The notes: generated by a model from the letters alone, not told the origin. Counted from the stretch's first letter, positions 1 through 53,428 are shown. The stretch: DNA of 64,000 nucleotides from Lepidodermella squamata (GCA_047495785.1 JBLDXI010000033.1:558001-622000); one strand, 5' to 3'. A program made the numbers and translations.

Positions 1-105
1 ATTGATCTTCTTGTGTTCATCGCAGCAATGTCAGGATTTGTCGCAATTGTGTGCTACTCATTTTTTACGATTTCAGAGAGCGAAGCAAAGAAACTTGCAT
101 TATGA
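1..105 (+). CDS. 3' end (M4 helix and C-terminus) of an upstream divergent Cys-loop channel subunit, partial
   Basis: Frame 1 reads IDLLVFIAAMSGFVAIVCYSFFTISESEAKKLAL*, nearly identical to the C-terminus of 2344..3576 (IDFIVFIIAMLGFVAIICYAVSTISESEARKIAL*). AATAAA at ~177. Confidence 0.9.
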   Translation: MDLLVFIAAMSGFVAIVCYSFFTISESEAKKLAL

Positions 106-382
106 ACCGTGATCTCTGTAGAAAGCTTTTACAGTTTATTTTGTCACAAAATATGCGCACGTTGAAACATTTTTGCAATAAAATTACGATTATATTCAAT
201 CGCGTAGCACAAGCAAATACCAGCCGTGAATTTCCAATACGCAATTACCACTCCGGACTATAATTACTCTCGTATCGATTTCTGTGAGTGTCGTCGCAGT
301 ATCGAACTGCCGTCTTACATTACCATCCTGGATGCGAGACCAATTTGGTTGTTTCCATGTGAGCAAAATTTAGCTCGAAATT

Positions 383-1567
383 ATGCATGTACTTCGGCTC
401 CAATTAGTCCTGTGCATCATAGCTGTGAAGCTTGAAAAGATCGCGTCTTTTGTTGAAGGAGATGACGAACTTGGGAAAGAAGCTACCCTTCAACTCATGC
501 GAGCTTGCAAACAGCTTTCGCCTGAAGTTTATTCCCCTACATGCATCAGAGGCCAAGGAAGGGGTGGAGTCTGCATTCCAACCAACGTTACCATACTCTT
601 CCAACCCGACTATCTGAAAGATGTCAACGACATTCAGCAGACTTTCACATTTACTGGAACTTTGAGATTTCTTTGGACAATAAAATGCCCTGAATTGGTC
701 TTCAATTACTCAAGAATCGTCAATACTGATCCTAATTTGTTCTGGAAACCAACGATCAATCACAAAAACACCCCTGTCAACTTCGGCATGGATGACGGAG
801 TTACAACTCGGTTCTTTTATAAACTAAACTATGGCAATGCGAAAAATCCAATCGAATTCAACTGGAACAGATTCGGGTCATTTTTGTCGATATGTCAAAT
901 GGATTTGAAGTACTTCCCGTTCGATGCCCAGGACTGCAAGGTGCTAATGTTGCTTCAAGAGCGCGTTGAAGCAGCTATGTTTCTGGGGCCGGTGAGTTTC
1001 CCGGTAGCAGACAGCTTTCTGACATCAAATGAAAACTGGGTTGTAACTCGGTTCTCGACCCAACTCTACACGGTTATTATCGAAGGCAGTAATCGAAGTG
1101 AAGCGGCTTTCCAGTTCCGAATCAAGCGACTCCCTGGTTACTACATCAACCATCTAATGGTGCCATCAATTTGCCTGGCGTTATTAGAAATGTTTCTTTT
1201 CGCTGTCCCACCGGCGATACCAGATCGACCGATGTTTGCTGTAACTATTCTTTTAGCGCTAACCTTCCTGCAGAGCCAAGTTGCTGCAGCTGTCCCGCCG
1301 AAGGATGAGCGAATTTTCCTTGCCACTTTCACATATCTATGCCAGGTTTTCTCACTTATCTGCACCATGTTTTTCACGGTGAGTTGCGGATACTCACGGA
1401 CCTGGAAGAAGTTCTACAGGCGAACTTTCGGGGTGAAAAAGCTAGTAATTTCACTGGAAAGAATCATTGACTTGATCGCACTGGTTATCGCTGTGTTTTG
1501 TTTCCTGGGCATTATTGGTTATGCATTTTCCACAATCGCTGAGAGCGAGAGAGTAAACGATTCTTGA
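383..1567 (+). CDS. Divergent Cys-loop (pentameric ligand-gated) ion channel subunit, intronless CDS
   Basis: Signal peptide, WKP loop A motif, Cys-loop CQMDLKYFPFDAQDC (C-x13-C), pre-M1 KR..YY, four hydrophobic helices with M2 PDRPMFAVTILLALTF. Confidence 0.93.
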   Translation: MHVLRLQLVLCIIAVKLEKIASFVEGDDELGKEATLQLMRACKQLSPEVYSPTCIRGQGRGGVCIPTNVTILFQPDYLKDVNDIQQTFTFTGTLRFLWTIKCPELVFNYSRIVNTDPNLFWKPTINHKNTPVNFGMDDGVTTRFFYKLNYGNAKNPIEFNWNRFGSFLSICQMDLKYFPFDAQDCKVLMLLQERVEAAMFLGPVSFPVADSFLTSNENWVVTRFSTQLYTVIIEGSNRSEAAFQFRIKRLPGYYINHLMVPSICLALLEMFLFAVPPAIPDRPMFAVTILLALTFLQSQVAAAVPPKDERIFLATFTYLCQVFSLICTMFFTVSCGYSRTWKKFYRRTFGVKKLVISLERIIDLIALVIAVFCFLGIIGYAFSTIAESERVNDS

Positions 1568-2343
1568 ATTTTGATTGTTTGCACCATCATACGAAATTCA
1601 TTCGATAATAAATTATCACGAAATTGTGCTCGTATCCCTGGCAATTGTCACATAAGTCGAACTCAGGTTTAATTTTGTGTCATTACTTTTCCATCCCTAT
1701 GAGCATATTGATGCAGGCAATTCGCGGGTTATCCGGCTCCCATGCACCCAGGCCACTATCCAGCTCCAGTTGCAGGACCCCAGTCGCCAACCGGTCATCC
1801 AGCGCTACCGCGCCGCGTTATACAACGCCAGCTTCTGGCTATACCTGCCCACCAGCTGGCGCCCCTGGTGCTCCCGTTTATTACTTATTAACCATCTCGT
1901 TAAATGTCACGCCAGGCCAATCGATTTTAGCTGCTATCTTCTTATGCCTCTGTACTTCAAAAGCCTTATACTGTCGTAAAATTAATCCAAGAGCTTCTCT
2001 ATAATTTAAATAAATGCCTAAAAAGGATTCATTTCATGATACTAGTTTATAGTACCGACTTTAAAATGTCTTGGGACATTATTCTTAGGTAGAGAAAATT
2101 GCATTTCATGTTATAAATGGATGAGAACGGAAAAACTGTATCGCACGCAATATAAAAATGGCATGGAACGGCGCGCCTCGATCAATCATCCTTTTTGTAG
2201 ACATAGACTAATTCTTGGGTCAACGGGGATTTAGTAATTATCCGCAAGAGTTTACAGCTCACGTGAGGTATTGCTCACCAGCCATGTGATGCGGGATGTG
2301 GGATTGAAACATGTTTTGGACGAAATAACGGACCGGTTGTTGC

Positions 2344-3576
2344 ATGTTTCATATCAAACGGCCAAATTTGAATGTCCGAAAAACGACTATTTTTCTGTCG
2401 TTACTAGCGCTTACTTGTCCAACCAGAGGCGATGAGCTGGACGAGCTCAGATTGGAGACAACGTTGGAAATGCGCCGGCTTTGCAAACACATGTCGCCTG
2501 AAGTGTATTCGCCAACCTGCATGAGGGGCCAGGGACGGGGTGGAGTTTGCATTCCAACGAATGTTACTATCCTCCTACAGCCGGACTATCTCAAGGAAGT
2601 CAACGACCTGTCTCAGTCATTTACTTTCACGGGAACGCTAAGATTCCTTTGGACTGTCAAGTGCCCACAATTCTTCTTCAACTACTCGAGAATCGTCAAT
2701 ACAGATCTGAGCGTGTACTGGAAGCCTACAATCAACCATAAGAACACCCCGGTAAATTTTGGCATGGATGATGGAGTCACAACTCGGTTCTTTTACAAAC
2801 TCAACTACGGCAACGAAAAAAATCCTATCGAATTCAACTGGAATAGATACGGGTCATTTCTCTCAATTTGCGAAATGGATCTCAAATACTTCCCATTCGA
2901 TCATCAAGATTGTCAAATCCTGCTTTTGCTTCAGGAAAGAATCGAAGCTTCGATGTTCACCGAGCCTGTTCAGTTTCCGGTTTATGATATTTTCCTAAAT
3001 TCGAATGAAAATTGGGTTGTTAGCCGGTACGCAAGTCGTTTATACACAGTTGTTGTAGAAGGAAGTAACAGAAGCGAGGCAGCTTTTACTTTTCGGTTGC
3101 TTCGAAAGCCAGACTATTATGTTAACCATCTCATGATTCCGTGTATGTGCATTTCATTCCTGGAGATTACGCTGTTCGCTGTCCCGCCCCGTGTCCCGGA
3201 TCGGCCCGTTTTCGATGTCACGATTATGCTCGCCTTAACTTTCTTGCAAAGTCAGATAGTTGAGTCGGTTCCGCAGAAAAGTGAACGAATTTTTCTTGTC
3301 AACTTCACCGATTTTTGCCAAATGCTGTCACTTCTATGCACGATTTTCTTCGTTGTCAGCTGTGGATACGTCAGGACGTACCAGACGTTTTTCAACAAAG
3401 TGGTTGTGGTTGATTTGAGCATTATCGGCTTCGACCAAAAGCGGAAACTCTTCTTACATCGAGAAAGAGTGATTGACTTTATTGTTTTCATCATAGCCAT
3501 GCTGGGATTCGTGGCGATCATATGCTATGCAGTTTCTACTATTTCAGAGAGCGAAGCACGGAAAATTGCATTATGA
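2344..3576 (+). CDS. Divergent Cys-loop ion channel subunit, close paralog of 383..1567
   Basis: Cys-loop CEMDLKYFPFDHQDC, long identical stretches with 383..1567 (WKPTINHKNTPVNFGMDDGVTTRFFYKLNYGN), 4 TM. Confidence 0.93.
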   Translation: MFHIKRPNLNVRKTTIFLSLLALTCPTRGDELDELRLETTLEMRRLCKHMSPEVYSPTCMRGQGRGGVCIPTNVTILLQPDYLKEVNDLSQSFTFTGTLRFLWTVKCPQFFFNYSRIVNTDLSVYWKPTINHKNTPVNFGMDDGVTTRFFYKLNYGNEKNPIEFNWNRYGSFLSICEMDLKYFPFDHQDCQILLLLQERIEASMFTEPVQFPVYDIFLNSNENWVVSRYASRLYTVVVEGSNRSEAAFTFRLLRKPDYYVNHLMIPCMCISFLEITLFAVPPRVPDRPVFDVTIMLALTFLQSQIVESVPQKSERIFLVNFTDFCQMLSLLCTIFFVVSCGYVRTYQTFFNKVVVVDLSIIGFDQKRKLFLHRERVIDFIVFIIAMLGFVAIICYAVSTISESEARKIAL

Positions 3577-3874
3577 ACTGAGAATTTTGCGTCATTAGCT
3601 TATTGTTAACATTGCTGTACGTACTTTGTATTTTTCGATCTGGCAGATGGGTGCGAAATTCCGATTGAAGATATTTTCATGAAAGTTTGGCATTTGGCAG
3701 CTCTAGCAATTTCTCAAAATCTCAAAGATACACATACAACGGTCCTTACGCTGAATTCACATTATGAATTTATCAAGCCCTACTCGTCAAATTGTGATTT
3801 CCGTTGAGAGATAGTCAGTTGGTCAGATGCGCCAAAAATTAGTTTTTTGAATGGAAATTGATAAACGCTAGCTC

Positions 3875-3961
3875 TGAAAAATTATTTCGAAACAATTTAC
3901 GAATGGGGGAATACTCAATATGTCTGGCCGTATTCGTGCATTGTTTCGAAATAATTTTTCA
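3875..3961. repeat. Small inverted repeat / hairpin (possible MITE remnant)
   Basis: TGAAAAATTATTTCGAAACAAT (3875-3896) and its exact reverse complement (3940-3961), with imperfect inward extension. Confidence 0.8.
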
Positions 3962-4703
3962 TTTATTTTCACGAATAAAGTTATGCACTCAGTAAATTGT
4001 TTATCGTCACATTGATTTTTTGCACACTTTGAAACATGTTTTGCAATAAATAAACTATGTTATAGGGCGCCATACCGATTCTCGAGTTGTTACGTAGTGG
4101 TGCGCAGCCAGCGCGCGTTGGCGCACATAGCGGCGCTGTGGTGTTCCCAGTACTCACGCATTTGGCTATGAGAGCGTGGTAAAGTAGAAGGAGTGGCGTT
4201 CCTATTTCCCCGTCACCTTCCGCGAAGTCATCGACGTGTCCTCTTGAACAGACCTTCCTGTTTATCAAAGCTACCTGCTCTCATTCGCTTTCTCTGCTTG
4301 TCATAGTCTTTGCAGTTCCGCAGTTAAATAATTCTTGCAAGGTTCCTTTGGAAAAACTATATTGACCTGGAAACTAAAGCTTCATTTGTATAAAAACGCT
4401 CTTCCGAGGATGCAAGATACGCATGTGTAACGCATGCTAATTATTATCTAGATTAGCATACCCATACTACTGATACACTTATGATGTCAATACATGCGCA
4501 TTCCTAAAATCACGCGTGGAGCACGACTCATGAGATAATTGGGTGGTGCTGATGTCTTGCCAATCCCTGAATTAAAATCTGGAAAATAACAGGGATGTAA
4601 TTTTGGGTTGCCACTCAGATCTGATTGAAAAAGTGACTTGAAACCGGGTCATTTTTCATCACGAGCCTCTGTGATTACTTATTGGATTTCTGCTTCACCA
4701 AAG

Positions 4704-7158
4704 ATGCTTCTTTATATGCTACATTATGCTAGTTACGCTCTTGCTTTGGCCCAGTACAAGAAGCCCAATGAGCTAGTCATGTTGAATATGATGCCACTAA
4801 GCAGCCCTAATATTCCTACCGCTTGCAGCACGGCGGCTAAATTAGTGATTGATACGGCGAATTCACGCAAAGACATTCTGCCTGATTACCACATTCGTAT
4901 GGTACTCAAAGACGAAGGACCAGCAGCTACGAGAGCCTCGCAGAGTTTTGTAAACTTCTTATGGGAATTCGAAAGAAATCTAACGAACAATTCCTACATG
5001 TCTCCTATGGTGATTGGAACTTCATTAGCTTGCCAGAGTAAGTTTTCGAGTCATTTTTTCTAAAAATTTAGTATAAAAATTTTTTGTTTCTATAGCCAAT
5101 GCACTGACAGTCAAGGTCAACAAGTTCATTCAGTTTGCTGAAGGTTGCGCTGGACCTTTTCTTATCGCAAGGCGAAACTTGTATAACCACTTGTATCGAG
5201 CCCAAGGACCTTTCGAAAATATCGGCATCCTCATTCCACTGTTCGCGAGAAAAGTTGGTGGATGGAATCAAATGGCTATATTCACCTCATCAGCAAATGC
5301 TAACGACGACATTTTCGGACGAATGTTACAGGGCATTTTCGCGGAAAATGATATCGAAGTCCCCTACTTCGGAAGTGAACCCGAGGTGAATCAAGATGTG
5401 ATTGATGCCATCAAATCTAGCGGGGCGCGAGTCATTGTGATGGCTCATGGGAATATCGGGGCGAACTACGTGAAGTTTCTCTGCTTAGCGTACAATGCAG
5501 GCATGACAGCACCTTACTACGTTTACATCGTTAACTTCTTCGCCTATACCACAGCTGGTGATCCCAGCTTGCCATTGATACCAGGCTGCACTAGGTTTAT
5601 GATAGCTGAAATGTTAAAGGTTACCTTTTTCTTCGGCATTGTTAACTTCGCATGGGAAAAGTTCGGACCAACGCCATTTGGCTATGATAACGATTATTTC
5701 GAAGCCTATCTAGCCAGAGAGCTCAACGGCACAAGAGTCGGGGATATAAATCAACGCCACGTTTGTCATGACGCAGCAATGGGGACAATTCTGGCCCTTA
5801 ACAGGAGTGAAGCCGTACTTCGCGAAAAGTACAACATGAGCTTGAAGGACTTTTCGACTAATCCTGATTTGGTCCGGCACGTTGTAAATGCCAGTACAGC
5901 CCTGACGGATTTTGTTGGCCTGAGAGCTGGAAGGATTCGATTCTCTGAGCGTTTGCTGATCGACAACGAGGACGTTTTCGTAGTACAGCAGGTTCCTGGA
6001 TCTGTTCGTATTGTCTACAAAATCACTCGAACTGATAATGACATCAGAACACTGAAAAACGCTAGTTCTTGGAAACTGAATCCAATGAGTGCCCCAGTTT
6101 GGTATACCAAGTCTGGACAGCCCCCCAAAGACCTGTCCCAGGTAATCCACCTATCATCCGAGTTTCCAACATCATCCTTTGGCGTGTTACTATCGATCGC
6201 TATTGCTTCAGCAATAACGCATGTGTCGATTTATGTTTTGCTGTCTCGGAAGGCTAATCGAGACAATTTCATCTTCTTTTTCGATTTTCCAACGAATTCT
6301 CTCCTTCTGTTCGGATGTGTAATCTTAGACTTGGGCGCCATTTTGTTGCTGTTAGAAATTTCGTACAACCCAGATGCTTTATGCCAGATTCGCCCGTTAT
6401 TTATATCTCTCGGTATAACAATTTGTAACGCAGTGATGCTGGTTCGAATTATTGGGCTACGCGATATCATGCGATCTCTTAGAAACCTGATGCCTCGTCA
6501 GAGCAAAGCCAATAGCATAACTGCAGTTTATTTCAACAATTACATGAGCAAGCGAGTGCCAACGTCCAAAAGACTGCAGTCCTTTGCATCCTTGATTGCT
6601 TCTGGGTGTATCCTAGCTGTTGTACTGATATGGATTTTCGGAGTTGATCACTTCAAAGTTGGGTATACAACCACGCCCGTTTCTTTTGACGAAGATCTCG
6701 ACTCATATTATGACACCAGGCATTATTTCTGCAGCTCAGTCAATGAATTATCGTGGCTCGGAGCGATTATCGGTATTAATGGGTTGATCACACTTGTCAA
6801 CTGTTTCTTCACTTACGATAGCCGGACTAAGCTGGAGACTCCGCTGGCTTTCTACAAGTTCGAATGCAACCTTCTAAGATTGGCGATAGTAAATGCAGCA
6901 ACCATTTTCTTCGCATTCCTTCTGATTGCCTATCTGATGTCGGGATCTGAAATCAATCAAATCACGGTCGTTGCGGTTGGGTCACTTTTATATTCGAACT
7001 CCATCTATCTGATATTGAACTACCCAGTTTGGTCGAATCGATGGCCAGTGGCAAAGATTGAAAACTCAAAATTTAGCGTTTCATCGAAGCACGTGGTGGG
7101 AGGATCCCGCTACAATCAAGTCTACATCAATGATAATAAGCGAACATCACGCCATTAA
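4704..7158 (+). CDS. Divergent GABA-B-like class C GPCR (Venus flytrap domain + 7TM); join(4704..5037,5096..7158)
   Basis: Signal peptide, VFT motifs (AN..DILPDY.I.M..KD, Y.HLYR..P, HDA), no cysteine-rich domain, seven hydrophobic helices with TM3 Cys and ECL2 Cys. A 58-nt phase-1 GT-AG intron restores the frame. Confidence 0.88.
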
Positions 7159-7986
7159 ACGCTCACACGGCTCTCCACATTGTTGGAGATTTCAGAATTA
7201 TATATTCAAAAAATCGTTCACTTGCATATGGAAAAATAGACTAAAGTTAGATTGATGTATTAATTGTGGAAGCTTTATCATTTTTTAGAATTCTGATTCG
7301 ATCGATTTATTATCTCACTTACGTTACACCTTATAAAGAACCGCGAACGAAGAGAGTTTTTTCAAATATATAATCCGTGCCATCCAAGATGGTTGATTCA
7401 GCAGCAAAAGATTGGACTTATTCGTTTATTTGTCAGCGAACAGATTCAGGAGGATTTTAATCTGCGTTTTCATGCATTTTTCTTAGTACCTTACAGTTCA
7501 AACTTGTACTTTCAGGGTACCTCTCCAAATCCTAACGGTCGCGAAATTCGCTGATTTACGGGAATGATCCTTGACCTGGCCTCGAACAGGACCCATCGAA
7601 AACCGGCCAGGAATAGCATCTTTAATGCACTCAGGGTATATCGCAGTTAGCTAGGATGAAAGTGTTCAAAATTGCACCAGATTACGGTAAACCATCAACA
7701 TAAACAGTCACATGTGCTCTACAGCTACAACGTCAACGATTCCTAAATTTTTTGATGGTATCCACTGTCAAACGAGGTTCATTTGATAATAAATGAATAC
7801 GAGACGATGGCAACGTCCTTGCCAATTGCCAAATGACGAACTCTGATTCAATTTTGCGTCAGTGCTTTTCCGATCAGGATTTTTAATTTCCTGTGAGTAT
7901 ATTTATGCAAGCAGATAAAACAAACAAACCAGCCTGTTCATTGCAATGAAACTTGCTTTTTTTCATTATCGAGATAATTCCGCGAC

Positions 7987-9144
7987 ATGCATTGGAATTT
8001 ACTGCTGTTTTTAGGAGCTGTTTTGGTGTTCCGATTATGCCATGGTTCAGATTACAGCCACGCGATAGATCTTATCCAAACTCAAGCTCGCGAGTTTCTA
8101 ACAAAGTGCCCAAATCTATCACCCGAAATTTATAGTCCAAGTTGCACGGGTGGGCCGAGGGCTGGCTCTTGTGAAGTAACGGCTGTCTATCCCCAACTTT
8201 CACCCGCAAGACTGGATGATGTTAGCGCTATTGAAGAGACCTTCACTATTTCTGGAGCTGTGAGATTCATTTGGTATGTAAAATGTCCAAACATAACAAC
8301 AGATTCTCGCATCACTAACGCTAATCCGCATCTATACTGGAAGCCCAACGTTTACCACAAAAACACGCCAAATAATTTCGGCATGGCTGATTCATTTGTA
8401 AGTAGGTTCTTCTTCAAATTTAACGTCTCAAAGCCAGACATCATTGAGGTCGCGTGGGCTAAATACGGCTCGCTTCTTACTACTTGTGAAATGGACTTTG
8501 GTCGGTTTCCATTCGACACGCAGTATTGTGAAGTCGTATTTTCCATGCAGGAAAACTTTGTCGCCGTTGCATTTGCCGAACCTGTCAATTTTATAGTCAA
8601 ACAACAGTTTCTTGATTCGAATGACGGTTGGTTGATCGCCTCTGGTGAGACGTCCATTTATGAAGTGGAAATGGATGGCAGTAACAGAAGTGAGGTTGCT
8701 TTCAGGTTGATCCTAAAACGGAAGCCAGACTTTTACGTGAATCATCTAATGATTCCAACATCGCTTCTCTCTGCCCTCCTTTTGATCTCATTTGCTATGT
8801 ATCCGTCAGTTCCTGATAGACCAGCTTTCTCGCTGACAATTCTCCTGGCTCTCACTTTTCTCCAAGGGCAAGTTCTAGATCGACTGCCGAACAAAAACGA
8901 CCGATTGTTCCTGTCGAATTTTACGGACCTTTGCCTCGCGCATTCAGCTATGGGAACGGTATATTTCTTGATTAGTTGCGGATTCGCAAAGACGCATAAG
9001 AAACTCGCTTCGCGGCCTCTTTTTAGAGGCCAAATCTCACTTTGCAGACTCGTTGACTTGCTCGTCTTCTTCATTCTCCTAGTTTGCTACTTTGGTATAC
9101 TAATTTACGCTCTAGTTGAAGCTAGAGACTCGGCTGTCATGTGA
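7987..9144 (+). CDS. Divergent Cys-loop ion channel subunit
   Basis: Signal peptide, Cys-loop CEMDFGRFPFDTQYC, M2 PDRPAFSLTILLALTF, 4 TM. AATAAA at ~9170. Confidence 0.93.
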   Translation: MHWNLLLFLGAVLVFRLCHGSDYSHAIDLIQTQAREFLTKCPNLSPEIYSPSCTGGPRAGSCEVTAVYPQLSPARLDDVSAIEETFTISGAVRFIWYVKCPNITTDSRITNANPHLYWKPNVYHKNTPNNFGMADSFVSRFFFKFNVSKPDIIEVAWAKYGSLLTTCEMDFGRFPFDTQYCEVVFSMQENFVAVAFAEPVNFIVKQQFLDSNDGWLIASGETSIYEVEMDGSNRSEVAFRLILKRKPDFYVNHLMIPTSLLSALLLISFAMYPSVPDRPAFSLTILLALTFLQGQVLDRLPNKNDRLFLSNFTDLCLAHSAMGTVYFLISCGFAKTHKKLASRPLFRGQISLCRLVDLLVFFILLVCYFGILIYALVEARDSAVM

Positions 9145-9294
9145 TCAAGATTGTTTTCTAACATGAATCAATAAATTGCCGGTGTGAAAACCAGCTGATT
9201 TGTAAGTGTGTTGAGTTTTTATTTGCTTATCAATTAAAAATGCGCGTCCCGAAAACTATCCAGACAAAAACAACCGACGCATTCATTTTTATAG

Positions 9295-10488
9295 ATGATT
9301 CGCCCCATAGAGTTGTTTCTACTGTCTTCGATTCCTTGCCTGATCTCAGCATGCTACAGCGAATTCGATGCACTAACTCATGAAGCTGCACTAGATCTGA
9401 TGAGAAAATGCCGCCATTTCTCACCTGAGGTCTATTCCCCAAACTGCATTCGCGGACAGGGCCGCGGAGGCATTTGTGAACCGACCAATGTTACCATCCT
9501 ATTTCAACCAGATCATCTTGAAGGAGTTAACGATCTTGCCGAGACTTTCACGATAACAGCTACTTTACGCTTCATCTGGACGATCCGATGTCAGAATTTT
9601 ACCGCTGAATTTTCTAGAATTGTTTCGACAGATGAGCATTTGTTTTGGAAACCGAACATTAATCACAAAAACACGCCTAGTAATTTTGACTTGAGTTCCG
9701 ATGTCGCGACAAGATTCTTTTATAAAGTCACAATGGGAAACAACACACCCATCGAGTTCAATTGGAATCGTTATGGGTCCTTTCTATCCCTCTGTGATTT
9801 GAATTACGAGCACTTTCCATTTGATCAGCAAAACTGTGCCGTAATATTTCTGTTACAAGAGCGAGTTGAAGCCGTGACCTTCGCAAGACCTATCACATTT
9901 GCGGTTTACAACAGCTTCCTAATCTCTAATGATAACTGGCTGGTTACCAATTACTCAACAAAGCTATACACTGTTGTTATCGAGGGTAGCAATCGTAGCA
10001 TAATCGACTTTCAGTTCGTTTTCCAGCGAGTTCCAGACTACTACGTAACACATTTGATAATACCAAGCGAGTTCCTATCGGCATTGATAATATTTCTATT
10101 CGCGATTCCGCCGCATATCCCTGACCGGCCGATGTTCGCTATGACAGTTTTGGTGGCCCTCACCTTCCTCCAGAGCCAAATAATGGCTCTAGTGCCCCCG
10201 AAGAGTATACGAAATTTCCTCGTCAATTTCACCGATATGGGCCTAGCTTTCTCGCTAGCTTGCACAAGTTACTTCATCGTCAGCTGTGGCTACTCTCAAA
10301 CATGGCGGAAAAGGTTTACAAAACGGAAGATTAACGTAAAGTCCTGCAGAATCTCCATTCAAAGACTTATAGATTTATTAGCCTTTTTAATGGCTCTTGC
10401 TGCATTTGTTGGAATCTCCTCGTTTGGTTTGACGACTATTTTAGGCTTAGATCATAAATATTCGCAGGCTCGAAATCAAAGTGCTTGA
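9295..10488 (+). CDS. Divergent Cys-loop ion channel subunit
   Basis: Signal peptide, Cys-loop CDLNYEHFPFDQQNC, M2 PDRPMFAMTVLVALTF, 4 TM. Confidence 0.93.
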   Translation: MIRPIELFLLSSIPCLISACYSEFDALTHEAALDLMRKCRHFSPEVYSPNCIRGQGRGGICEPTNVTILFQPDHLEGVNDLAETFTITATLRFIWTIRCQNFTAEFSRIVSTDEHLFWKPNINHKNTPSNFDLSSDVATRFFYKVTMGNNTPIEFNWNRYGSFLSLCDLNYEHFPFDQQNCAVIFLLQERVEAVTFARPITFAVYNSFLISNDNWLVTNYSTKLYTVVIEGSNRSIIDFQFVFQRVPDYYVTHLIIPSEFLSALIIFLFAIPPHIPDRPMFAMTVLVALTFLQSQIMALVPPKSIRNFLVNFTDMGLAFSLACTSYFIVSCGYSQTWRKRFTKRKINVKSCRISIQRLIDLLAFLMALAAFVGISSFGLTTILGLDHKYSQARNQSA

Positions 10489-10929
10489 TCAACTAAATAA
10501 AACGAACAGTAAGCTCGAAATCTGATCTTACTTTTTGTATTTAGCTAAGACTTCATCGCTACCGATTTGGAAGAGTTTGAATGTAATGCAACACTCTCCG
10601 GTGAATTCGAAGTGTAAATATAGCAATCACTCGCGTTCAACATTTAGAATTTCAAACCAATAGGAACGACTTCGTATGGGCGTTGTAGCCGGAAGGCGCA
10701 AAAAGCTTTGGCAAGAGTCACGCAGACGTGCGGTTTCATAAAGCAGTGCAAGTATAAGAGCCGCCAGGATAATCCTGAAAACTGAAAAGTCCCTGGAACT
10801 ATCCGCAGCAGCATTTAGGGGACTGCCCAAACAACGTTTTACTTTACAGTCGTGCAAATTTCACGCGCGCATTACTGGGTATTCTCGTTTTTGTCTTTTG
10901 TGAAGAGTTCAGTTAATCCAAATTCAATA

Positions 10930-12667
10930 ATGGGGACTTTAATCCAGTTTCTAATATTGACAATTGTCTATATCAGTTCAATTCAAGCAAAGCCAAATGA
11001 ACTGGTCCTTTTAAATTTGATGCCGCAGCCAAATATTAACGCTCTAACTGCTTGCAGTGCGGCTGCTCAGCTTGTTGCAGACATGGCAAATACTCAGGAT
11101 AACTTACTACAAGATTACCGCATTCGAATGGTAGTGAAAGACGAAGGATCTGTTGCATCACGAGCACCGCTCAATTTCATCAACTTCCTTCGGGAATTCG
11201 AAGAAAATCGTGCGAATAACTCCTTCATCTCTCCTATTATTATCGGGACGTCAGTGGCATGCCAAAGTAAGACTTTAAGAGGATGTTTAACCTGTTTAAT
11301 CTTCAAAGTTATCAGGCGTTGCACTTACCGTGAAAGCGAATAATTTTATTGAATTCGCTGAGGGCTGTGCCGGCCCAGTGTTGATTGCCAAGCGTTCTTT
11401 GTACAGCCACCTTTACCGTGCTCAAGGTCCATACGAAAACATGGCGGCTTTAATTCCAGAGTTTGGAAGACGAGTTGGAAGCTGGAAACAAATGGCTATT
11501 TTCACGTTCTCTGGCAACTCTAATGACGATATTTTCGGGAAAATGCTTCAGGGCGCTTTTGCTCAGCAAAATATTGAGGTCCTGTTTTACGGAAGTGAAT
11601 CTGATGTTACGCCAGCTGTTATTGACGCAATCAAAGCCAGCGGATCTCGAATTATAGTCTCAGCGCATGGTCAAGCATGGCTCTACGTAAAGTTCCTCTG
11701 TCTGGCGTATAGCGCAGGAATGACAGCTCCATTCTACGTCTATATCGCCAACTTTTTCACTTACATTACCGCTGACGACCCAGCTCTGCCCTTAATTCCA
11801 GGCTGTACTCGTGAGATGGTCGCTGAGATGATGAAAGTGACCTTCTTCTTCGGTTTGGTTCAGAGCGCGTGGGAGAAATTCGGACCGACCCCATTTGGTT
11901 ACGATACTGATTGGTTTGAAGCTAACATGACTAAAAGATTGAATGGGACAAAAGTTTATGACATGGTACAGAGGCACATCTGCCATGATGCAACAATGGG
12001 AGCAATACTTGCTCTCAACAGGAGTGAAGCTATCCTTCAAACTCAGTACAATTCAAGTCTGAAAGATTTTATGGCGAAACCTGACTTGGTGAAACAAGTT
12101 GTTAACGCTAGTGCAGCTGAAACGGACTTTATCGGTCTTCGCGTTGGACGAATAAGATTCTCGGAAAGGCTCCTGATTGATAACGAAGATGTCTTAGTTG
12201 TTCAGCCAATAACAGGTGCTGTAAGAATGGTTTATAAAATAAGCCGTTTGGACAATAATTACCGGACTTTGACAGACCTGAGCACTTACAAGTTCAACCA
12301 GATGCAACGCCCAATTTGGTTTACTAAATCTGGCCAGCCACCCAAGGACATATCCAAAGTCTCTCGGTTAATTAATCGTTTCCCTCTTCCAGCATTTGTT
12401 GTTCTCGTTTCAACAGGAGCACTAATTCTTATCTTCCAAATCGTCAACTTCGGACGTCTCGCTTTCGATAAAAGAAATCATGACAGTTACATCTTTTTCT
12501 TTCATATCCCTTCAAATTTGTTGTTCGCTGTCGGTGTTATTTTTCTCGATGTGGGAGTTATACTGATCGGATTAAAAATTATTATCGGACTTAAATTCTA
12601 CTATCAACATACCTATTTCTGTAAAATCGTAGCGCGTAAATTGGAGAAAATAAGAGCTTCCTCTTAA
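10930..12667 (+). pseudogene. 5' part of a second GABA-B-like GPCR, truncated after TM2 by an inversion; join(10930..11266,11316..12667)
   Basis: Paralog of 4704..7158 with the same phase-1 intron (49 nt). Homology stops at 12567 (DVGVILI) and the frame runs ~30 codons into unrelated sequence. Confidence 0.85.
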
Positions 12668-13108
12668 GTGCCACAAAACTCATCTACGTGCCGAACATTT
12701 GATCATCAGTGGTTTTCCGGCTGTCCATTTTTCACGCTGATAAAAAAACACGGAACTTGAAACAAAGGAAAATTTGCTAAAATAGCAGACAACATCTATG
12801 AAAGAAATGCGGCGCCGGTCCCTAACCCAACCAATATTCTAACATTTTTTTTATTACAAACCTACATATGCACCGATCCCACGTTAACACGAATAAAATT
12901 GAGACATCCATTAGGAGGAAAGTAAGGAGAAGAAAGGTATATCATGTCGGGTGCTATGACAATGCTGTGAAATATGAACCGTTAATTGTTAATACATCAT
13001 TCGAGGTTGTAGAAACGTCGGGCCATAATGCGTTAACAATTTGGAGTGACATCGTTTCATAACTGAAAATGTCTCAAATTTTTAAAACAAAAAAAGGCAG
13101 CAGAGTTT

Positions 13109-14004
13109 TTATCGAGATAACCGGCTGATTCTAGCTGAGCTTGATCTGACAGCAACTTTCAAATTTTGTTGTCTAATGATGGGCCAGCGATTCGTAATTA
13201 CAGGAAAAAATACGATGAAAAAGGTTGAATAGGAGTAAATCAACACGCCAGTTACAACTGCAATCAGCTGGTTGTATTCAGAACCTGATAGTAGGTAGAC
13301 TACAAGCGGTAGGGCAAAGTATATCGCTGATGCATTGACGATAGCGATTCGCAAAAGGTTGCATTCGTATTCATAAAAGTGAACAATTTCCAACTTAGTG
13401 CGACTGTCGTAGGCGAAGAAGCAACTAGCGAGCAACAAAAATGCATTCAGTCCCAAAAAAGCAGCCAGCCAAGGATACTCGTAAGCCGAGGTGCAAGCGT
13501 AATTCTGTATCGCAAAATAAGAGTCGAGGAACTCATCGAAGAAAACCGGAGAAATTATGAGCTTTCCTTCGAATGAATCAAGGGCGAAGATCCAGGCTAG
13601 GACTAGACCAGCTGTAGAAGCTGTGACTATGAGAGAGAACAAAATCTGCATGCGCTTTGACGTCGGTACTTTTCTCAGCATGTGAACACTGAAATCATTA
13701 GCATTGATTGAATCTCTTCGATTCTGAAACATCAAAGTTTTGAGAGATCGCATGACATCGCGAAGACCGAAGATTCTGGCAGTCAAAAATGAGTTACAAA
13801 CTGTCATTCCGATTGTGATAAACAAAGGCCTGATGACGCAAAGCTGGTTTAAAATGAACAGCTCGAGGAGTATCAGTATAACTCCCACATCGAGAAAAAT
13901 AACACCGACAGCGAACAACAAATTTGAAGGGATATGAAAGAAAAAGATGTAACTGTCATGATTTCTTTTATCGAAAGCGAGACGTCCGAAGTTGACGATT
14001 TGGA
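13109..14004 (-). pseudogene. Inverted 3' part (end of TM1 to TM7 and stop) of the second GPCR
   Basis: Minus-strand ORF continues exactly where the plus-strand gene breaks (LFAVGVIFLDVGVILILLEL...RWP). 13872..14004 is the reverse complement of 12435..12567. Confidence 0.9.
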
Positions 14005-14016
14005 TCCGATAATAAA

Positions 14017-16412
14017 ATGTCGCTTATTCATCTGATTGCCATTTTCACTATAAATTGGGTGAAAGGCGAGAATCTCAGAACTAAAACAAACGAGATTGTC
14101 CTACTTAACCTGATGCCACGACCTAATTCCGCTGTCCCAACTGCTTGCAGTGCAGCTGCAAACATCGTAATTGACGCCACTAATGCACGAGCTGATGTGC
14201 TGCCAGATTACCATATTCGAATGGTAGTTAAGGATGAGGGTAGCGCAGCGATGAAAGCGCCGCAAAGTTTCGTTAACTTTTTATGGGAATCGGAAGAAAA
14301 TCAAGCGAGCAACAGCTACTTATCGCCAATCGTCATTGGAACTTCTTTGGGCTGTCAGAGTTAGTTACCAAAATTCTTCATTCCATTTCAAGCTTAATAC
14401 TAAGCATTCTTATCTTAGCTGTAGCTCTTGCGATCAAGATGAACAACTTCATTGAATTTGCAGAAGGATGTGCTGGCGCTAGTTTGATTGCAAGGCGTGC
14501 GTTGTACAATCACTTGTACAGGGCTCAAGGTCCCACCGAGAACGTGGCTACATTGATTCCAGCATTTGCAAACCGGCTTGGGCGTTGGAAGCAATTGGCA
14601 ATATTAACCTATTCGGGAAACATCAACGATGATCTGTTCGGTAAAAGCGTTCAAAATGCGATGAACCGGCAAAACATGGATACGCCATATTTTTTAAGCG
14701 AAAATGATATTACGCTAGAAACTGTGGAGGCTATTAAGAACAGCGGAGCACGAATTATTGCTTCGGTACACGGACAAACGTGGCTGTTCGTCAAACTGCT
14801 TTGTTTAGCCTACGAAGCTGGAATGACTGCACCCTATTTTGTATACTTCGGCAACCTTTTGACATACGTCACAGCTGAAGATGCAGCTCTGCCATTGACA
14901 CCTGGTTGTACTCGAAGCATCATCGCCGAGATGCTTAAAATTACATTCTTCTTCGGTTTGGTTCAGAGTGCTTGGGAGAAGTTCGGACCCACTCCTTTGG
15001 GCTACGACACAGATTGGTTCGAAGCAAATCTCGCCAAGGAGCTGAATGGAACAAAGGTAAATGATGTAGGTCAGAGGCACATTTGCCACGATGCAGCTAT
15101 GGGTACTGTGTTAGCCCTGAACCGCAGTGAATCCATTCTTCGAGATCGCTACAATTTGAGCTTGAAAGACTTTTCGACGCATCCTGAAATAATCCGGCAC
15201 GTTGTGAACGCTAGCGCAGCAGAAACCGATTTTATAGGGCTCCGCATCGGGAGAATTAAATATTCCGAGCGGTTACTAGTCGATACAGAAGATGTTTACC
15301 TAATTCAACAATACCTGGGATCTAATCGTTTGATCTTCAAAAGTGTGCGCCTAGATACTGATTATCGAACGATTTCAAATTTGAGCACTTATAAGATTGT
15401 GACATTACAACCTCCAGTTTGGTACACGAAATCGGGACAGCCTCCAAAAGATCTATCGAATTCGATTCGCTTATCAACTAAATATCCAATTTCGTCCTTC
15501 CTTGTCCTGATATTCCTTACGTTGGTAATCTTCATCGGGCAACTCGTTTCCTTCTTTAGACTCATGCGACAGAGAAACCGTGAGAGGTTCATTTTCTTCT
15601 TGGATATGCCGACAAATGTACTTTTCCTATTCGGATGCATGCTGCTCGACATCGGAGCTGTGATTGCATTGATGGAACTCACGTTTTTTCAGGACATTTT
15701 GTGCCCCATCAGACCGTTGCTGATTTCGATTGGCGTAACAGCTTGTAATGCAGTAATGATTGTTCGAATTTTCGGACTTCGAGACGTTATGCAATCCATC
15801 AAAGAAATGATGTTTCGAGGTGGCCGCAGTTCAATAACAGTTGACAATTTCAACCTTCGTTTGAAGCCAAGGTTTTTGAAATCTCAGCGACTGCAGTTCA
15901 TCTGCGCTTTAGTTATAACCGCCTCTGTAGCCGCTGCAGTTTTTGTTTGGACGCTCGCTGCTTCTCCATTCGAAATCATCTCCATAGTGTCACCTGTCTT
16001 GTTCAGTGAGAAACTTGATTCTTACTATGATACTCAGTACTACTTCTGCACATCTAACGATGAATTTTCATGGCTTGGCGCTGTCATCGCGTTGAATGCT
16101 TTCATTTTACTTGCGAGCTGCTTTTTCGCCTACGAAAGTCGCACCAGACTTGATATCGCGTATTTCTACGCCTTCGAATGTAAACTGCTGCTACTCGCAG
16201 TAATCAACGCCACTACGATGTTCTTCGCTTCGATGTTGATAGTTTACGCCCTCGGTAGGACAGAGTTCAGCCAAATGACAGCAGTCGTGGTTAGCGCACT
16301 GCTGTACTCTGCGTCTACTTTCCTGATCATGTTTTTCCCAGTTTGGTCAAATCGCTGGCCAGTTGCCAAGCAAAATAACTTGAAGATTGTCTGTGAACCT
16401 ACCAAAGCCTAA
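14017..16412 (+). CDS. Third divergent GABA-B-like class C GPCR; join(14017..14359,14419..16412)
   Basis: Signal peptide, VFT + 7TM collinear with the paralogs, same phase-1 intron (59 nt) after GCQ. Confidence 0.88.
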
Positions 16413-16799: not shown

Positions 16800-19303
16800 T
16801 TACAAATGGCTGTTATTGAGCTGTAAAGCGTCGCCAAACGCTCGTGAAGGTTCGTCTAATATTTCAACTAACGCGGTTTCAACGCGTCGGACGAAAACAA
16901 GCCGCATAGTTTTACGAATCTCATCCGGAACTTCAGCCTCAACATCCGCCTGATTGCCAGCCGGCAAAATCACCGTGGCCACACCCTGTCGACGTGCTGC
17001 CGCTAATTTCTCACGAATACCCCCTACAGGTAGTACGTAGCCCCTAAGTGTTATCTCACCCGTGACTGCAACGTTCGATTTTGTTGGAGTCTGAGCGAAA
17101 AGTGATACAATAGCCGCTAAAAGGGCTAACCCGGCTGATGGGCCGTCTTTAGCAACGGCTCCCAGAGGTAAATGAACGTGAATATTAGTGGCTTGAGGGT
17201 CCATAGCTACTGCTTTAGTATTATAGCCAAGACGACTTTTGAACCAAGATAAAGCCAATAGGGCTGATTCTTTAATGACATCACCCAACTGCCCGGTTAG
17301 ATGAAGTTTCCCGTCGCCTGGCATCGCCGAGACCTCAACGTGCATCACCTCGCCGCCCATTGGAGTCCACGCTAGGCCGAGGCAGACACCGGGTAGATTC
17401 AGCCGCGATGCTGTTTCCATGCCATTTTTAAATCGAGGAGGTCCGAGAAGTGAAACCAGTTCGTCTACCTTAATAAGGAACCTGTAAAACAATATTCAAT
17501 ATAGGAATCAGATTTTTCAAAAAATATTTACGTGTGCCTTTCGGTAGATTCGCCGGGTAATTTCGCGCAAATGCGACGGCAAAGTGTCTCCAGAACTCGT
17601 TCCAACTGCCTAACCCCAGCTTCTCGAGTGTATGACGTCAAAATCAGCTTAATCGCTTCTTTTTCAATCTGAATTTCACCTGGCGATAGGCCATGGCGGG
17701 CTAGTTGTTTCGGCAGAAGGTAGCCCTCGAGAATTTTCTCCTTCTCCTCAGGCGTGTAACTCGGCACGTTGATAACTTCCATCCGATCTAACAATGCAGG
17801 GTGCGCATTCGAAACTGTATTAGCCGTTGTAATGAAGATAACTTGAGACAAATCGAACGGCAGGTTAAGGTAATGATCGACAAACGCCGAATTCTGCTCA
17901 GCATCTAGAACTTCGAGTAAAGCAGCGGCAGGGTCGCCGTGAATACCTGGCGTGGTTTTGTCGATTTCGTCCAATAGAATCAACGGGTTTTTCGAGCCAG
18001 CCGCCTTAACAGCGGCAAGAATTCGCCCTGGCATCGCGCCTACGTACGTCCTTCGATGGCCGCGAATATCTGCATGATCGCAGACACCACCGAGAGAAAT
18101 TCGTTGAAATTTACGACCCATTACCTCGGCCAAAGTTCGAGCTATTGAAGTTTTTCCAACCCCAGGCGGGCCGACTAAACACAAAATCGGACCTGTGCTG
18201 AATGGGGTCTCTTTACCGCGGCTTGTCAGAACCTTCCGAACAGCTAGAAACTCAACTAATCGCCGTTTAATTTCATCCAGACCATAGTGACGTTCATCCA
18301 ACAACCGTTTCGCTTCGTCTAGATCCAGCCGATCGTAGGTTGAGACATTCCACGGCAAATCGACGATGAAATCCAGGTAACTCCTCGTTATCGAATAATC
18401 AGGCATATGCGGTACCATTTTTCGCAGGCGGACGAGTTCTTTCGATGCAAATTCTCGAACGCTGTCTGGTAAATTTTCGATTTTCGCCTCAACCGCGTCC
18501 AATTCGTTCTTCTCATCCGAATCGTCATCGTCATTCATTTGCCGCTTTCTGGCCGATGCTTTAATCAATGCATCTAGAGCATCAGGTTTGGCAATAACGA
18601 CGTAATTATTTTTCGATTGATTCGCTTGAATCGGTAATCGCTTGACATTACTCGCAGATTTCGCCAATTGAACTTGTTTTTCAATTAGTGGAATCAAAAA
18701 TTTCAATCGGTCGAGAATTTCGACTTTAGATAGTAATGTTAGTTTGTCCTTTTCGCTCAAGGAAACGTATTGACAAGCAATATCGGCGAGTAAATTAGGC
18801 GGAAGTCCGCTGAGAGTTTGTTTGAATCGAGAAGCTTCCGTAGAATTTGTGCCAAAAGCCGTTGCTAAGTTATAGAGCAGGTCCCGCACAGTTTCAGAAG
18901 CTTGCACGACGTCTTTTGATGAGTAAACTTCAAGCTGAGGTTTCAAATCCGAGCAAAGTGGCTCCAGTTGCTCAATAGCGGCGACATAATACGGGTCTTC
19001 TTGAATTAGCCGATTTATTTTAACACGGCATAATCCGGTGACTAATAGGCTGTAAAAAGGTTTGGGCCAGTTAGTTCCAGTAACTTGAATGACACTTGCA
19101 GCTGTTCCATATTCATTGCGACTGCTTTTCGGAATAACAACGATGACACTTTGGCCTAACATCAAGTTAGCCACCAGGAATTTCGATTTCACCAAGTTGA
19201 TGAATTTTTCATTTGTGTCGGCAATTCTGATGGTAGAGCCGGGAATGAGGACGTCATTCACAAGAACAGCCGGTAATTCATCGGCAATTTTTGTAAGGGC
19301 CAT
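16800..19303 (-). CDS. LONP2: Peroxisomal Lon protease; complement join(16800..17481,17532..19303)
   Basis: Lon N-domain, Walker A GPPGVGKTS, RGHRRTYVGAMPG, Walker B LLDEIDK, catalytic KDGPSAG, C-terminal PTS1-type SHL. 50-nt intron. Confidence 0.95.
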
Positions 19304-19368
19304 CTCATAATATTTTAATAACACTAGAAAGAGACGAAAATTGATAGGTATAGAAGGGTGATTTATCG

Positions 19369-52204: not shown

Positions 52205-53428
52205 TCATATCCATGCTTTATCTATTGCTACGAAATAGACACTTAAGGAGATGGCGATTAGTGCAATGGAAGCGAGGCCTCCTACAATCAAATCTAACAA
52301 TCTACTGTATGAAATGCTCGGGCAACGAAGAGGGCTCGATCCAACTTTCCAACTGACCAACCTCCGAAAAACTTCCTTGTAAGTTCGAGTTAGGGCGAGA
52401 CTAACTAACGAGTATGTTGTGATTGCTAGGGCAAGGAGAGTACAGTTGTCCGTAAAGTTACTCAGCAGGATTTTCTGTGATTTCTGAGGAACTCTAGCGA
52501 GAATTTCACCCTGGAAAAAAGTTAGTGCCAATAGTATAGTCACCTGAAATACAGGTCTATCAGGCATATTAGGCGGCATTATCAACCCAGCAATGTCCAA
52601 GCTCATCAGGACCAATACTGGCGCAAGTAGATTGTTGATAAAGTACCAAGGATTTCGTTTGAAATTCAACTGAAAGATAACCAAGCTTCTTGCCCCAGAA
52701 ATATCGACGGTCCCGGTTGAGTAGCTGAATGAAACATATTTCCAGCTTGACCCAACACTTGGCATGAAAGCGTCATCGACCAAACTGGAATTCGAGACGG
52801 TAAAAATAGAGGCATTGTGGTGTTCCTGCATCACAAATGCAATGATGCAAGATTGGTTGTCGAACGGAAAGACAGCGTAATCCATCGGGCAGTGCGATGA
52901 AAACACTCCAATGCGCTGCCAAGAAAATTTAATGGTCTCGTTTTCTGGAGCATCCTTATTTGGTACGTAGCTAACAAACATGCGACTGGTGAACGTGTCT
53001 CCGAGACTGAAACTTAGAACTGCATTTTTGTGATGCATCTTCGGACGCCAGAATAGACTTTCATCGATGTAGAACAGAGTAGAATCGTTTTTCCTATAGT
53101 TCTGACAGGATAAGGACCATTCAAGGGTTAAACTTGCTGATAGATCCAGAGTTTCATCAGCATCATTGATGCCTTGAAAGCGCAAGACGTTGAAAACTAT
53201 GTTTATCGGCGTTACTTTGCAATCGTCGGGGTTCGATATCCTGCCATCTAAACAATTTGGAGTATAAATTGCTGGGCGGAAGTGAGGGCAAGCTCGGAGA
53301 AGCTCTGAACTTCTATCAATGACTAAATCGTTGGGTGCATTAGTTGAAGCCCATCGGTTCACCTCGGCGCCGGAGGCAATTATTGAGTGAAAAGAAGTGA
53401 TAACTATAGCAAATACTTTGAGGATCAT
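52205..53428 (-). CDS. Divergent Cys-loop ion channel subunit, outlying family member
   Basis: Cys-loop CPMDYAVFPFDNQSC, WRP..HHKN, M2 PDRPVFQVTILLALTF, same four extra N-terminal Cys as the array genes. Confidence 0.92.
   Translation of the reverse strand: MILKVFAIVITSFHSIIASGAEVNRWASTNAPNDLVIDRSSELLRACPHFRPAIYTPNCLDGRISNPDDCKVTPINIVFNVLRFQGINDADETLDLSASLTLEWSLSCQNYRKNDSTLFYIDESLFWRPKMHHKNAVLSFSLGDTFTSRMFVSYVPNKDAPENETIKFSWQRIGVFSSHCPMDYAVFPFDNQSCIIAFVMQEHHNASIFTVSNSSLVDDAFMPSVGSSWKYVSFSYSTGTVDISGARSLVIFQLNFKRNPWYFINNLLAPVLVLMSLDIAGLIMPPNMPDRPVFQVTILLALTFFQGEILARVPQKSQKILLSNFTDNCTLLALAITTYSLVSLALTRTYKEVFRRLVSWKVGSSPLRCPSISYSRLLDLIVGGLASIALIAISLSVYFVAIDKAWI

Follow-up and report, generated by a model that had tools for sequence, protein, structure and literature searches.

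The stretch of DNA considered here, a window of 64,000 nucleotides (nt) from Lepidodermella squamata (GCA_047495785.1 JBLDXI010000033.1:558001-622000), opens with an array of genes for two families of receptors, Cys-loop ligand-gated ion channels (LGICs) and class C G protein-coupled receptors (GPCRs) that resemble GABA-B receptors. A listing of open reading frames (ORFs), Pfam scans and tblastn with the window's own receptor proteins placed the receptor genes within 1-16412 in the order LGIC-LGIC-LGIC-GPCR-LGIC-LGIC-GPCR-GPCR, all on the plus strand except for the 3' part of one GPCR gene, G2, which lies on the minus strand. An earlier note, made from the sequence alone, had described this order and the shared orientation of the genes, and with the exception of the 3' part of G2 both were borne out by the Pfam and tblastn searches. 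All eight of the receptor genes that it had counted are recognisable, although of the first LGIC the window holds just the last 34 codons and the stop, in an array that continues upstream. The features of the array, together with a ninth receptor gene, a more distant channel gene of the same family (Lfar), are as follows.

1-105, plus strand: L0, the tail of a channel gene (last 34 codons and stop), whose frame-1 translation resembles the C-terminus of L2
383-1567, plus strand: L1, predicted intronless Cys-loop channel subunit of 394 amino acids (aa); Neur_chan_LBD 29.9 bits, RNA contigs
2344-3576, plus strand: L2, predicted intronless Cys-loop channel subunit of 410 aa; Pfam, tree, RNA contigs over the coding sequence (CDS)
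4704-5037 and 5096-7158, plus strand: G1, predicted GABA-B-like class C GPCR of 798 aa; 7tm_3 38.1 bits, ANF_receptor 20.9 bits
7732-7871, plus strand: short relic of the end of an L1-type gene (stop codon plus 3' flank); 142 nt align to 1553-1692 at 72% identity
7987-9144, plus strand: L3, predicted intronless Cys-loop channel subunit of 385 aa; Neur_chan_LBD 35.1 bits, tree
9295-10488, plus strand: L4, predicted intronless Cys-loop channel subunit of 397 aa; Pfam, Cys-loop motif, tree
10930-12567, plus strand: 5' part of G2 (exon 1 10930-11266, exon 2 from 11316); ANF_receptor 19.2 bits
12435-12567, plus strand: left arm of a 133-nt inverted repeat, within the G2 coding sequence; repeat search
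12568-13871, minus strand: inverted segment, made up of the former 3' flank of G2 (12568-13108) and the remainder of the G2 CDS (13109-13871); 7tm_3, tblastn
13872-14004, minus strand: right arm of the inverted repeat, 12 nt short of the start codon of G3
14017-14359 and 14419-16412, plus strand: G3, predicted GABA-B-like class C GPCR of 778 aa; 7tm_3 47 bits, best PDB match GABA-B R2
52205-53428, minus strand: Lfar, predicted channel of the same family, 407 aa; Neur_chan_LBD 36.4 bits, tree

The receptor array and its transcription

The window begins inside a channel gene. Positions 1-112 share 77% DNA identity with 3472-3583 at the 3' end of L2, and L0 is the tail of a gene that the window start truncates, so that the array extends upstream of the window. 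An exact search with the L1 protein retrieved no contig by which the array could be followed further in that direction. Between the receptors no recognisable unrelated gene was found, in agreement with the earlier note: the ORFs in the inter-receptor spaces matched no Pfam family, and Rfam and tRNA searches of the array were also empty. L3 and L4 are separated by a gap of 150 nt (9145-9294), while other neighbouring pairs stand 277-1127 nt apart.

The two families differ in gene structure. Each of the channels, L1-L4 and Lfar, is encoded by a single ORF, whereas G1, G2 and G3 each contain one phase 1 intron (58, 49 and 59 nt, respectively) at the identical codon, directly past a conserved Cys-Gln. 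The intronless coding sequences that had been proposed for the locus are thus a property of the channels and not of the GPCRs, and the intron of G1 was seen spliced. Two public runs contain the locus, and contigs from the RNA run (X2) and the DNA run (X1) were mapped onto 383-6382; the evidence for transcription comes from this one run, flagged as RNA and with its tissue unstated. RNA-run contigs span the coding regions of L1, L2 and G1, and RNA depth falls to approximately zero over the intergenic intervals 1583-2382 and 3383-4782. The G1 intron (5038-5095, GT..AG) is removed in the RNA run by a joint from 5037 to 5096, which is absent from the DNA run. RNA over the coding sequences, hardly any between them and the spliced joint together indicate that L1, L2 and G1 are separate transcription units and that the G1 model is correct. 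At least these three genes are transcribed.

The DNA-run contigs were identical to the window across long stretches, including 776-2451 through the L1-L2 intergenic region, with zero differences. The same run also holds a second variant at about half depth over 3636-3876 and 4797-5238, which is marked by a 96-nt indel (3727-3824), single-base indels and clusters of single-nucleotide polymorphisms, and the RNA contigs frequently match this variant. This suggests that the locus has either a second, divergent haplotype or a paralogous copy of very recent origin.

The channel and GPCR proteins

Neur_chan_LBD was matched by the array channels at 26.9-35.1 bits, or 26.9-36.4 bits with Lfar included (cut-off 26 bits), and Neur_chan_memb at 22.2 bits, which is under its cut-off of 28.1 bits. 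The membrane region was nevertheless recovered when a profile of the five channels was compared with the alpha-6 subunit of the nicotinic acetylcholine receptor (nAChR), the alignment running through M1-M3 with an E value of 1e-19. With this five-channel profile, nAChR alpha-6 and alpha-4 were found at E values of 1e-19 to 1e-20, followed by 5-HT3A. All five channels, L1-L4 and Lfar, have a Cys-loop of the form C-x13-C with FPFD. An AlphaFold model of L1, computed from a 40-sequence alignment (pLDDT 91.9), consists of strands at 67-249 followed by four helices at 252-274, 281-303, 312-340 and 358-393, and a Foldseek search with this model returned nAChR alpha-7 and muscle chains as the best matches, with GABA-A and GlyR chains close (E 5e-20, target TM-score at most 0.83). 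M2 is of the nicotinic type, with Thr at 6' and Leu at 9', and is preceded in all five channels by a Pro-Asp-Arg-Pro entrance; the pore is likely to be cation-permeable. The loop between M3 and M4 is only approximately 20-30 residues long, four extra extracellular cysteines are invariant, and identity to named nAChRs is 15-26%. Taken together, these features identify the channels as predicted minimal Cys-loop subunits of the nicotinic/5-HT3 branch, which would form pentameric LGICs.

The residues of the putative binding site set these channels apart from receptors for acetylcholine. In the hidden Markov model alignment to alpha-6, the column of the loop-B Trp is occupied by an invariant Gln followed by Glu, and loop C is a short Gly-Ser-Asn-Arg-Ser that has no Cys-Cys pair. 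With neither the Trp of loop B nor the Cys pair of loop C, the channels belong to the superfamily without being receptors for acetylcholine. L1-L4 have loop B (Gln-Glu-Arg/Asn) and loop C (Gly-Ser-Asn-Arg-Ser) in common, near identical from one to the next, and these four channels probably bind one non-cholinergic class of ligand, possibly as co-assembling subunits.

For the GPCRs, the seven-helix family 7tm_3 was matched at 38.1 bits by G1, 39.6 bits by the minus-strand piece of G2 and 47 bits by G3 (cut-off 33.5 bits), and ANF_receptor at 19.2-20.9 bits, under its cut-off of 25.4 bits. The nearest language-model clusters all combined ANF_receptor with 7tm_3 and lacked a cysteine-rich domain, and a Pfam scan likewise detected no NCD3G, the family of this domain, between the flytrap and the first transmembrane helix (TM1). 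PDB matches were limited to GABA-B R2 (E 3e-6) and R1, and the sole named match in the databases was a GABA-B R1-like protein from a scallop with 21% identity; E values of these GABA-B matches ranged from 1e-5 to 3e-6. The linker Gly-Gln-Pro-Pro-Lys-Asp corresponds in the alignment to Ser-Glu-Pro-Pro-Lys-Asp in GABA-B R2. The C-termini, however, end 20-45 residues past TM7, and with no GBR2_CC match in the Pfam scan the C-terminal coiled coil that serves R1/R2 pairing is absent. An AlphaFold model of exon 2 of G3 reached a pLDDT of 48, too poor for a fold search. By their domain content, G1-G3 are predicted tail-less GABA-B-like class C GPCRs with a putative flytrap, no cysteine-rich domain and seven helices, and presumably they signal as class C dimers.

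Duplication, inversion and relatives

The channels of the array form a well supported local clade, (((L1,L2)100,L4)99,L3)100, in which L3 is the earliest branch. A metagenomic relative supplies the sister of this clade, a gene that it has in single copy, and Lfar, which is approximately 33% identical to L1-L4, falls outside it. L2 is 66% identical to L1, and the L0 tail is closest to L2. The three GPCRs are equidistant from each other (56-59% identity), and a tree of them with the scallop GABA-B-like protein as outgroup gave a star without resolved branches. The description of both families as locally duplicated, diverged and orphan-like was therefore upheld, by the 99-100% support for the local channel clade and by best database identities of 21-26% for both families. 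Expansion by blocks of the type LGIC-LGIC-GPCR, which the earlier note had also put forward, fared less evenly, as the channel tree fits such blocks but the GPCR tree is a star and the window cuts the array. A two-block model, [L3-type, Lx-type(s), G1][L3, L4, G2] with G3 following, is plausible on these data and would have an L3-type gene lie beyond the window start, further upstream. A simple one-to-one pairing of the blocks, L1 with L3 and L2 with L4, was rejected.

The order of the genes consists of four runs, and in random orders of five LGICs and three GPCRs four or fewer runs occur with a probability of 0.43. Two abutting pure arrays would give two runs, so that the four observed call for at least one duplication of a mixed block or one rearrangement; such a mixed-block event needs no selection. 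The 140-nt relic between G1 and L3 indicates that further rearrangement occurred. This relic (7732-7871) contains the AATAAA of L1, whose 3' flank shows no alignment to those of L0, L2, L3 and L4. A GPCR-like fragment upstream of G2 (10768-10857; 33% identity to G2 residues 266-295, E 0.002, with stops) was not robust and was set aside; it may be a decayed exon or a chance match.

G2 offers a more recent event. A perfect 133-nt inverted repeat has its arms at 12435-12567 and 13872-14004, 100% complementary and separated by 1304 nt, the left arm being G2 coding sequence and the right arm repeating that same coding sequence. The 5' part of G2 encodes the putative flytrap domain and the start of the membrane domain, as far as the end of the left arm; as assembled, the ORF then runs into the inverted flank and meets a stop at 12667. 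On the minus strand, the ORF at 13109-13921 accounts for the 7tm_3 match of 39.6 bits given above and carries the G2 stop codon at 13109-13111. When 12567 was joined in silico to the reverse complement of 13109-13871, an uninterrupted ORF of 783 codons was obtained, which aligns to G1 and G3 over its full length. G2 is thus an otherwise intact gene split by a 1.3-kb inversion. The segment at the breakpoint is kept on the left and recurs inverted on the far side, with what had been the 3' flank turned round between the two copies. Inversions made through staggered breaks leave an inverted duplication at their breakpoints, and we interpret the layout at G2 as the footprint expected of such breaks. 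As the arms are identical, the inversion is of recent date, unless the segment continues to flip. Only 12 nt separate the right arm from the start codon of G3, and the inversion has accordingly also replaced the upstream region of G3.

This inversion is the sole gene-disabling lesion found in the array. The earlier note was right that one copy is broken, but the copy is G2, split and not decayed, as flipping the segment restores its ORF. Birth-and-death turnover, another of its suggestions, is represented by one recent inversion and one 140-nt relic and not by a series of decayed copies.

Selection was assessed from Nei-Gojobori counts, in which the proportions of synonymous (pS) and nonsynonymous (pN) differences were obtained for each pair of paralogues and for each region of the protein. 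In every pair pS was 0.65-0.9, which is saturated, and pN 0.13-0.5. The duplicates are thus old and under purifying selection, and with pS saturated the duplications cannot be dated or compared between the two families. The values of pN by region were:

LGIC extracellular domain (L1-L2): pN 0.13
LGIC TM1-3 (L1-L2): pN 0.20
LGIC M3-M4 loop and M4 (L1-L2): pN 0.33
GPCR flytrap: pN 0.20-0.24
GPCR 7TM: pN 0.32-0.33

In both families pN is lowest in the ligand-binding domain. The check on these domains that had been suggested for a chemosensory locus, namely selection on the ligand-binding regions, therefore went against it. Binding domains conserved in this way are the opposite of a ligand-diversifying repertoire, and fit recognition of the same ligand class or co-assembly.

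The upstream regions of the eight genes (L1-L4, G1-G3 and Lfar) held no common k-mer beyond shuffled controls, in a comparison of low power with eight short promoters. TTTACAG occurs upstream of four of the eight start codons, for example at 10843-10849 before G2, a frequency within the shuffled range; it could be an element of the 5' untranslated region or a trans-splice acceptor.

Close relatives of either family were scarce. Word-indexed protein searches gave two matches for L3 and one for G3, whereas an exhaustive search with the channel profile recovered 84 clusters at E<1e-30, mostly of 370-420 aa. Nine of the ten best clusters, which were looked up, came from metagenome or run assemblies (ENA, Logan), and the tenth was a fused bivalve gene model ('alpha-7'). 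Scans of JGI metagenomes with the GPCR and LGIC profiles returned zero relatives. Five distinct loci of relatives (within L003-L012) carry one to three related channels each, solitary or in pure arrays of two or three, with a homeobox gene, MUN-domain genes, ABC transporters and solute carriers as neighbours. No GPCR homologue was found by tblastn of G1-G3 against these five loci with up to 10 kb of flank. A match of G1 in one of them (L009) was spurious, with gaps and a stop, and covered a loop region only. As the relatives are remote and their loci non-orthologous, the lack of a GPCR in them is weak evidence against conserved linkage. A search of the literature found no description of a mixed cluster of LGICs and class C GPCRs, which does not prove that none exists.

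Downstream, the array ends at the first unrelated gene, a protease of the Lon family:

16800-19324, minus strand: peroxisomal Lon protease (LONP2); Pfam Lon_C, AAA and LON_substr_bdg, with named relatives at approximately 45% identity

This gene is split by a very short intron of about 35 nt. Its relatives in molluscs, cnidarians and others are approximately 45% identical, and the best match (58%) lies on ENA metagenome contigs (loci L001 and L002), on which gene density equals that of the window. Because the Lon proteins of named animals are only about 45% identical, the window appears to come from a lineage that has no close annotated relative. The remaining genes of the window encode an RBR ligase, a phosphofructokinase (PFK), a hydrolase, a forkhead protein, a GNAT protein, PAN/Kringle proteins and a leucine-rich repeat (LRR) protein. 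Lfar is solitary among unrelated genes, PAN/Kringle and LRR genes included.

Origin of the mixed order and known systems

We favour, with moderate confidence, an origin of the array by neutral interleaving of two tandem receptor families through segmental duplication. The window start would be the downstream end of a tandem receptor array in a compact animal genome, in which the channel and GPCR families first came to abut. Unequal crossovers or segmental duplications across the boundary between the families would then have interleaved them while the single orientation was kept, and G2 would recently have been split by an inversion with staggered breaks. The mixing would most likely have arisen neutrally, as a consequence of dense gene packing and duplication in tandem, and would not be a functional unit. 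Several points weigh against this. Four runs in place of two mean that a mixed block was copied or relocated at least once, and selection for a mixed channel-GPCR unit is possible. Moreover, the test for upstream motifs had low power with eight short promoters, and the relatives that were examined are distant (25-40% identity), at loci not orthologous to the array.

The earlier note had envisaged a dual ionotropic and metabotropic chemosensory locus. On a functional reading of this kind, a block of LGIC-LGIC-GPCR would be co-duplicated because its genes are co-regulated and co-expressed in sensory cells, where they would answer the same external chemicals with fast ionotropic and slow metabotropic responses. 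The order is indeed interleaved, co-oriented and uninterrupted, the channel tree can accommodate two blocks, [.. L0-2 G1] and [L3 L4 G2], and both families are without close named relatives and are transcribed in one RNA run. Residues of the canonical transmitter site are missing in the channels and may be missing in the GPCRs. However, conservation is highest in the ligand-binding domains of both families and loops B and C are near identical in L1-L4; the duplications are old, with pS saturated; no common upstream motif exceeded shuffled controls; no GPCR stands beside the related channels at the five loci of relatives; and with a star for the GPCR tree, co-duplication is no more than plausible. 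The chemosensory and co-functional reading is thus not supported, with no positive evidence and some against it, and we regard such a locus as unlikely. A mixed block that is a selected unit, recurring in the genome, co-duplicated and co-expressed so that one ligand class evokes both a fast ionotropic response and a slow metabotropic one, is in our judgement very unlikely.

Conservation of the binding domains also bears on another explanation, according to which L1-L4 would co-assemble in heteropentamers and G1-G3 heterodimerise in signalling by an endogenous (neuro)transmitter or modulator, their clustering being no more than a trace of duplication, as in the GABA-A subunit clusters of vertebrates. 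The explanation has some precedent in GABA-B receptors, which are obligate heterodimers, and in nicotinic-type channels, most of which are heteromeric. It is further consistent with extracellular and flytrap domains that are conserved while membrane and loop regions drift, with loop B, loop C and the Pro-Asp-Arg-Pro pore entrance common to L1-L4, and with duplicates that are old and constrained. On the other hand, the GPCRs lack the coiled coil of GABA-B1/B2 pairing, their tails ending 20-45 aa past TM7, and we hold the explanation as a whole to be rather unlikely. An artefact of assembly, in which the G2 inversion or the interleaving would be a mis-join or a collapsed or duplicated haplotype, is highly improbable. 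Repeat arms that are 100% identical could point to it, as could the haplotype-like second variant of the DNA run at about half depth, for example the 96-nt indel at 3727-3824. The DNA-run contigs nevertheless match the window exactly over long stretches (776-2451), the retained and inverted copies of the breakpoint segment are the footprint of staggered breaks and not of a mis-join, and the interleaved order covers 16 kb of unique sequence.

If, as we favour, the mixing is neutral, the locus is one more lineage-specific receptor array, of descriptive value as a record of two highly divergent and unannotated receptor families, predicted minimal channels of the nicotinic branch and tail-less GABA-B-like GPCRs, and G2 provides a clean example of a gene split by what appears to be a staggered-break inversion. 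Were non-random linkage and co-expression to be true, the array would represent a new organisation of ionotropic and metabotropic sensing of one cue, and the two families would be worth de-orphanising jointly.

Parts of the array recall known systems. Vertebrate V2R/T1R receptors and fish OlfC receptors are class C GPCRs of the CaSR/mGluR branch, with a cysteine-rich domain and a variable flytrap. They resemble G1-G3 in forming tandem arrays through lineage-specific expansion, but the GPCRs of the window have no cysteine-rich domain and a flytrap that is more conserved than the 7TM region. GABA-B R1/R2 share with G1-G3 the 7TM region, a flytrap that is putative in G1-G3, the lack of a cysteine-rich domain and the PPKD linker, and are their sole PDB matches; the differences lie in an identity of approximately 21%, the missing C-terminal coiled coil and an ANF_receptor score under the cut-off. 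The GABA-A subunit clusters of vertebrates belong to a single superfamily, are intron-rich and are conserved across vertebrates. Like the array, they keep old, constrained channel paralogues side by side after tandem duplication; in contrast, the array mixes two superfamilies and its channels are intronless.

The closest likenesses are for the channels. Cephalopod chemotactile receptors are contact chemoreceptors derived from nAChRs, which have lost the aromatic residues that bind acetylcholine and are encoded by tandem single-exon genes. The channels of the window resemble them in a derivation from the nicotinic branch, the loss of the acetylcholine pocket and tandem single-exon genes, but their binding loops are conserved among paralogues and not diversified. 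In molluscs and other lophotrochozoans, nAChR-like genes without introns have expanded into tandem arrays of 2-12 genes that are specific to their lineages (Jiao et al. 2019, PMC6896357). The channels of the window, whose best PDB sequence and fold matches are nAChR alpha subunits, are likewise nicotinic-branch, intronless and tandem. They differ in their subunits of approximately 390 aa, in which the M3-M4 loop is nearly absent, the N-terminal part carries extra cysteines and the entrance to the pore reads Pro-Asp-Arg. Furthermore, the lophotrochozoan arrays consist of nAChR genes only, whereas here the channels are interleaved with GPCRs.

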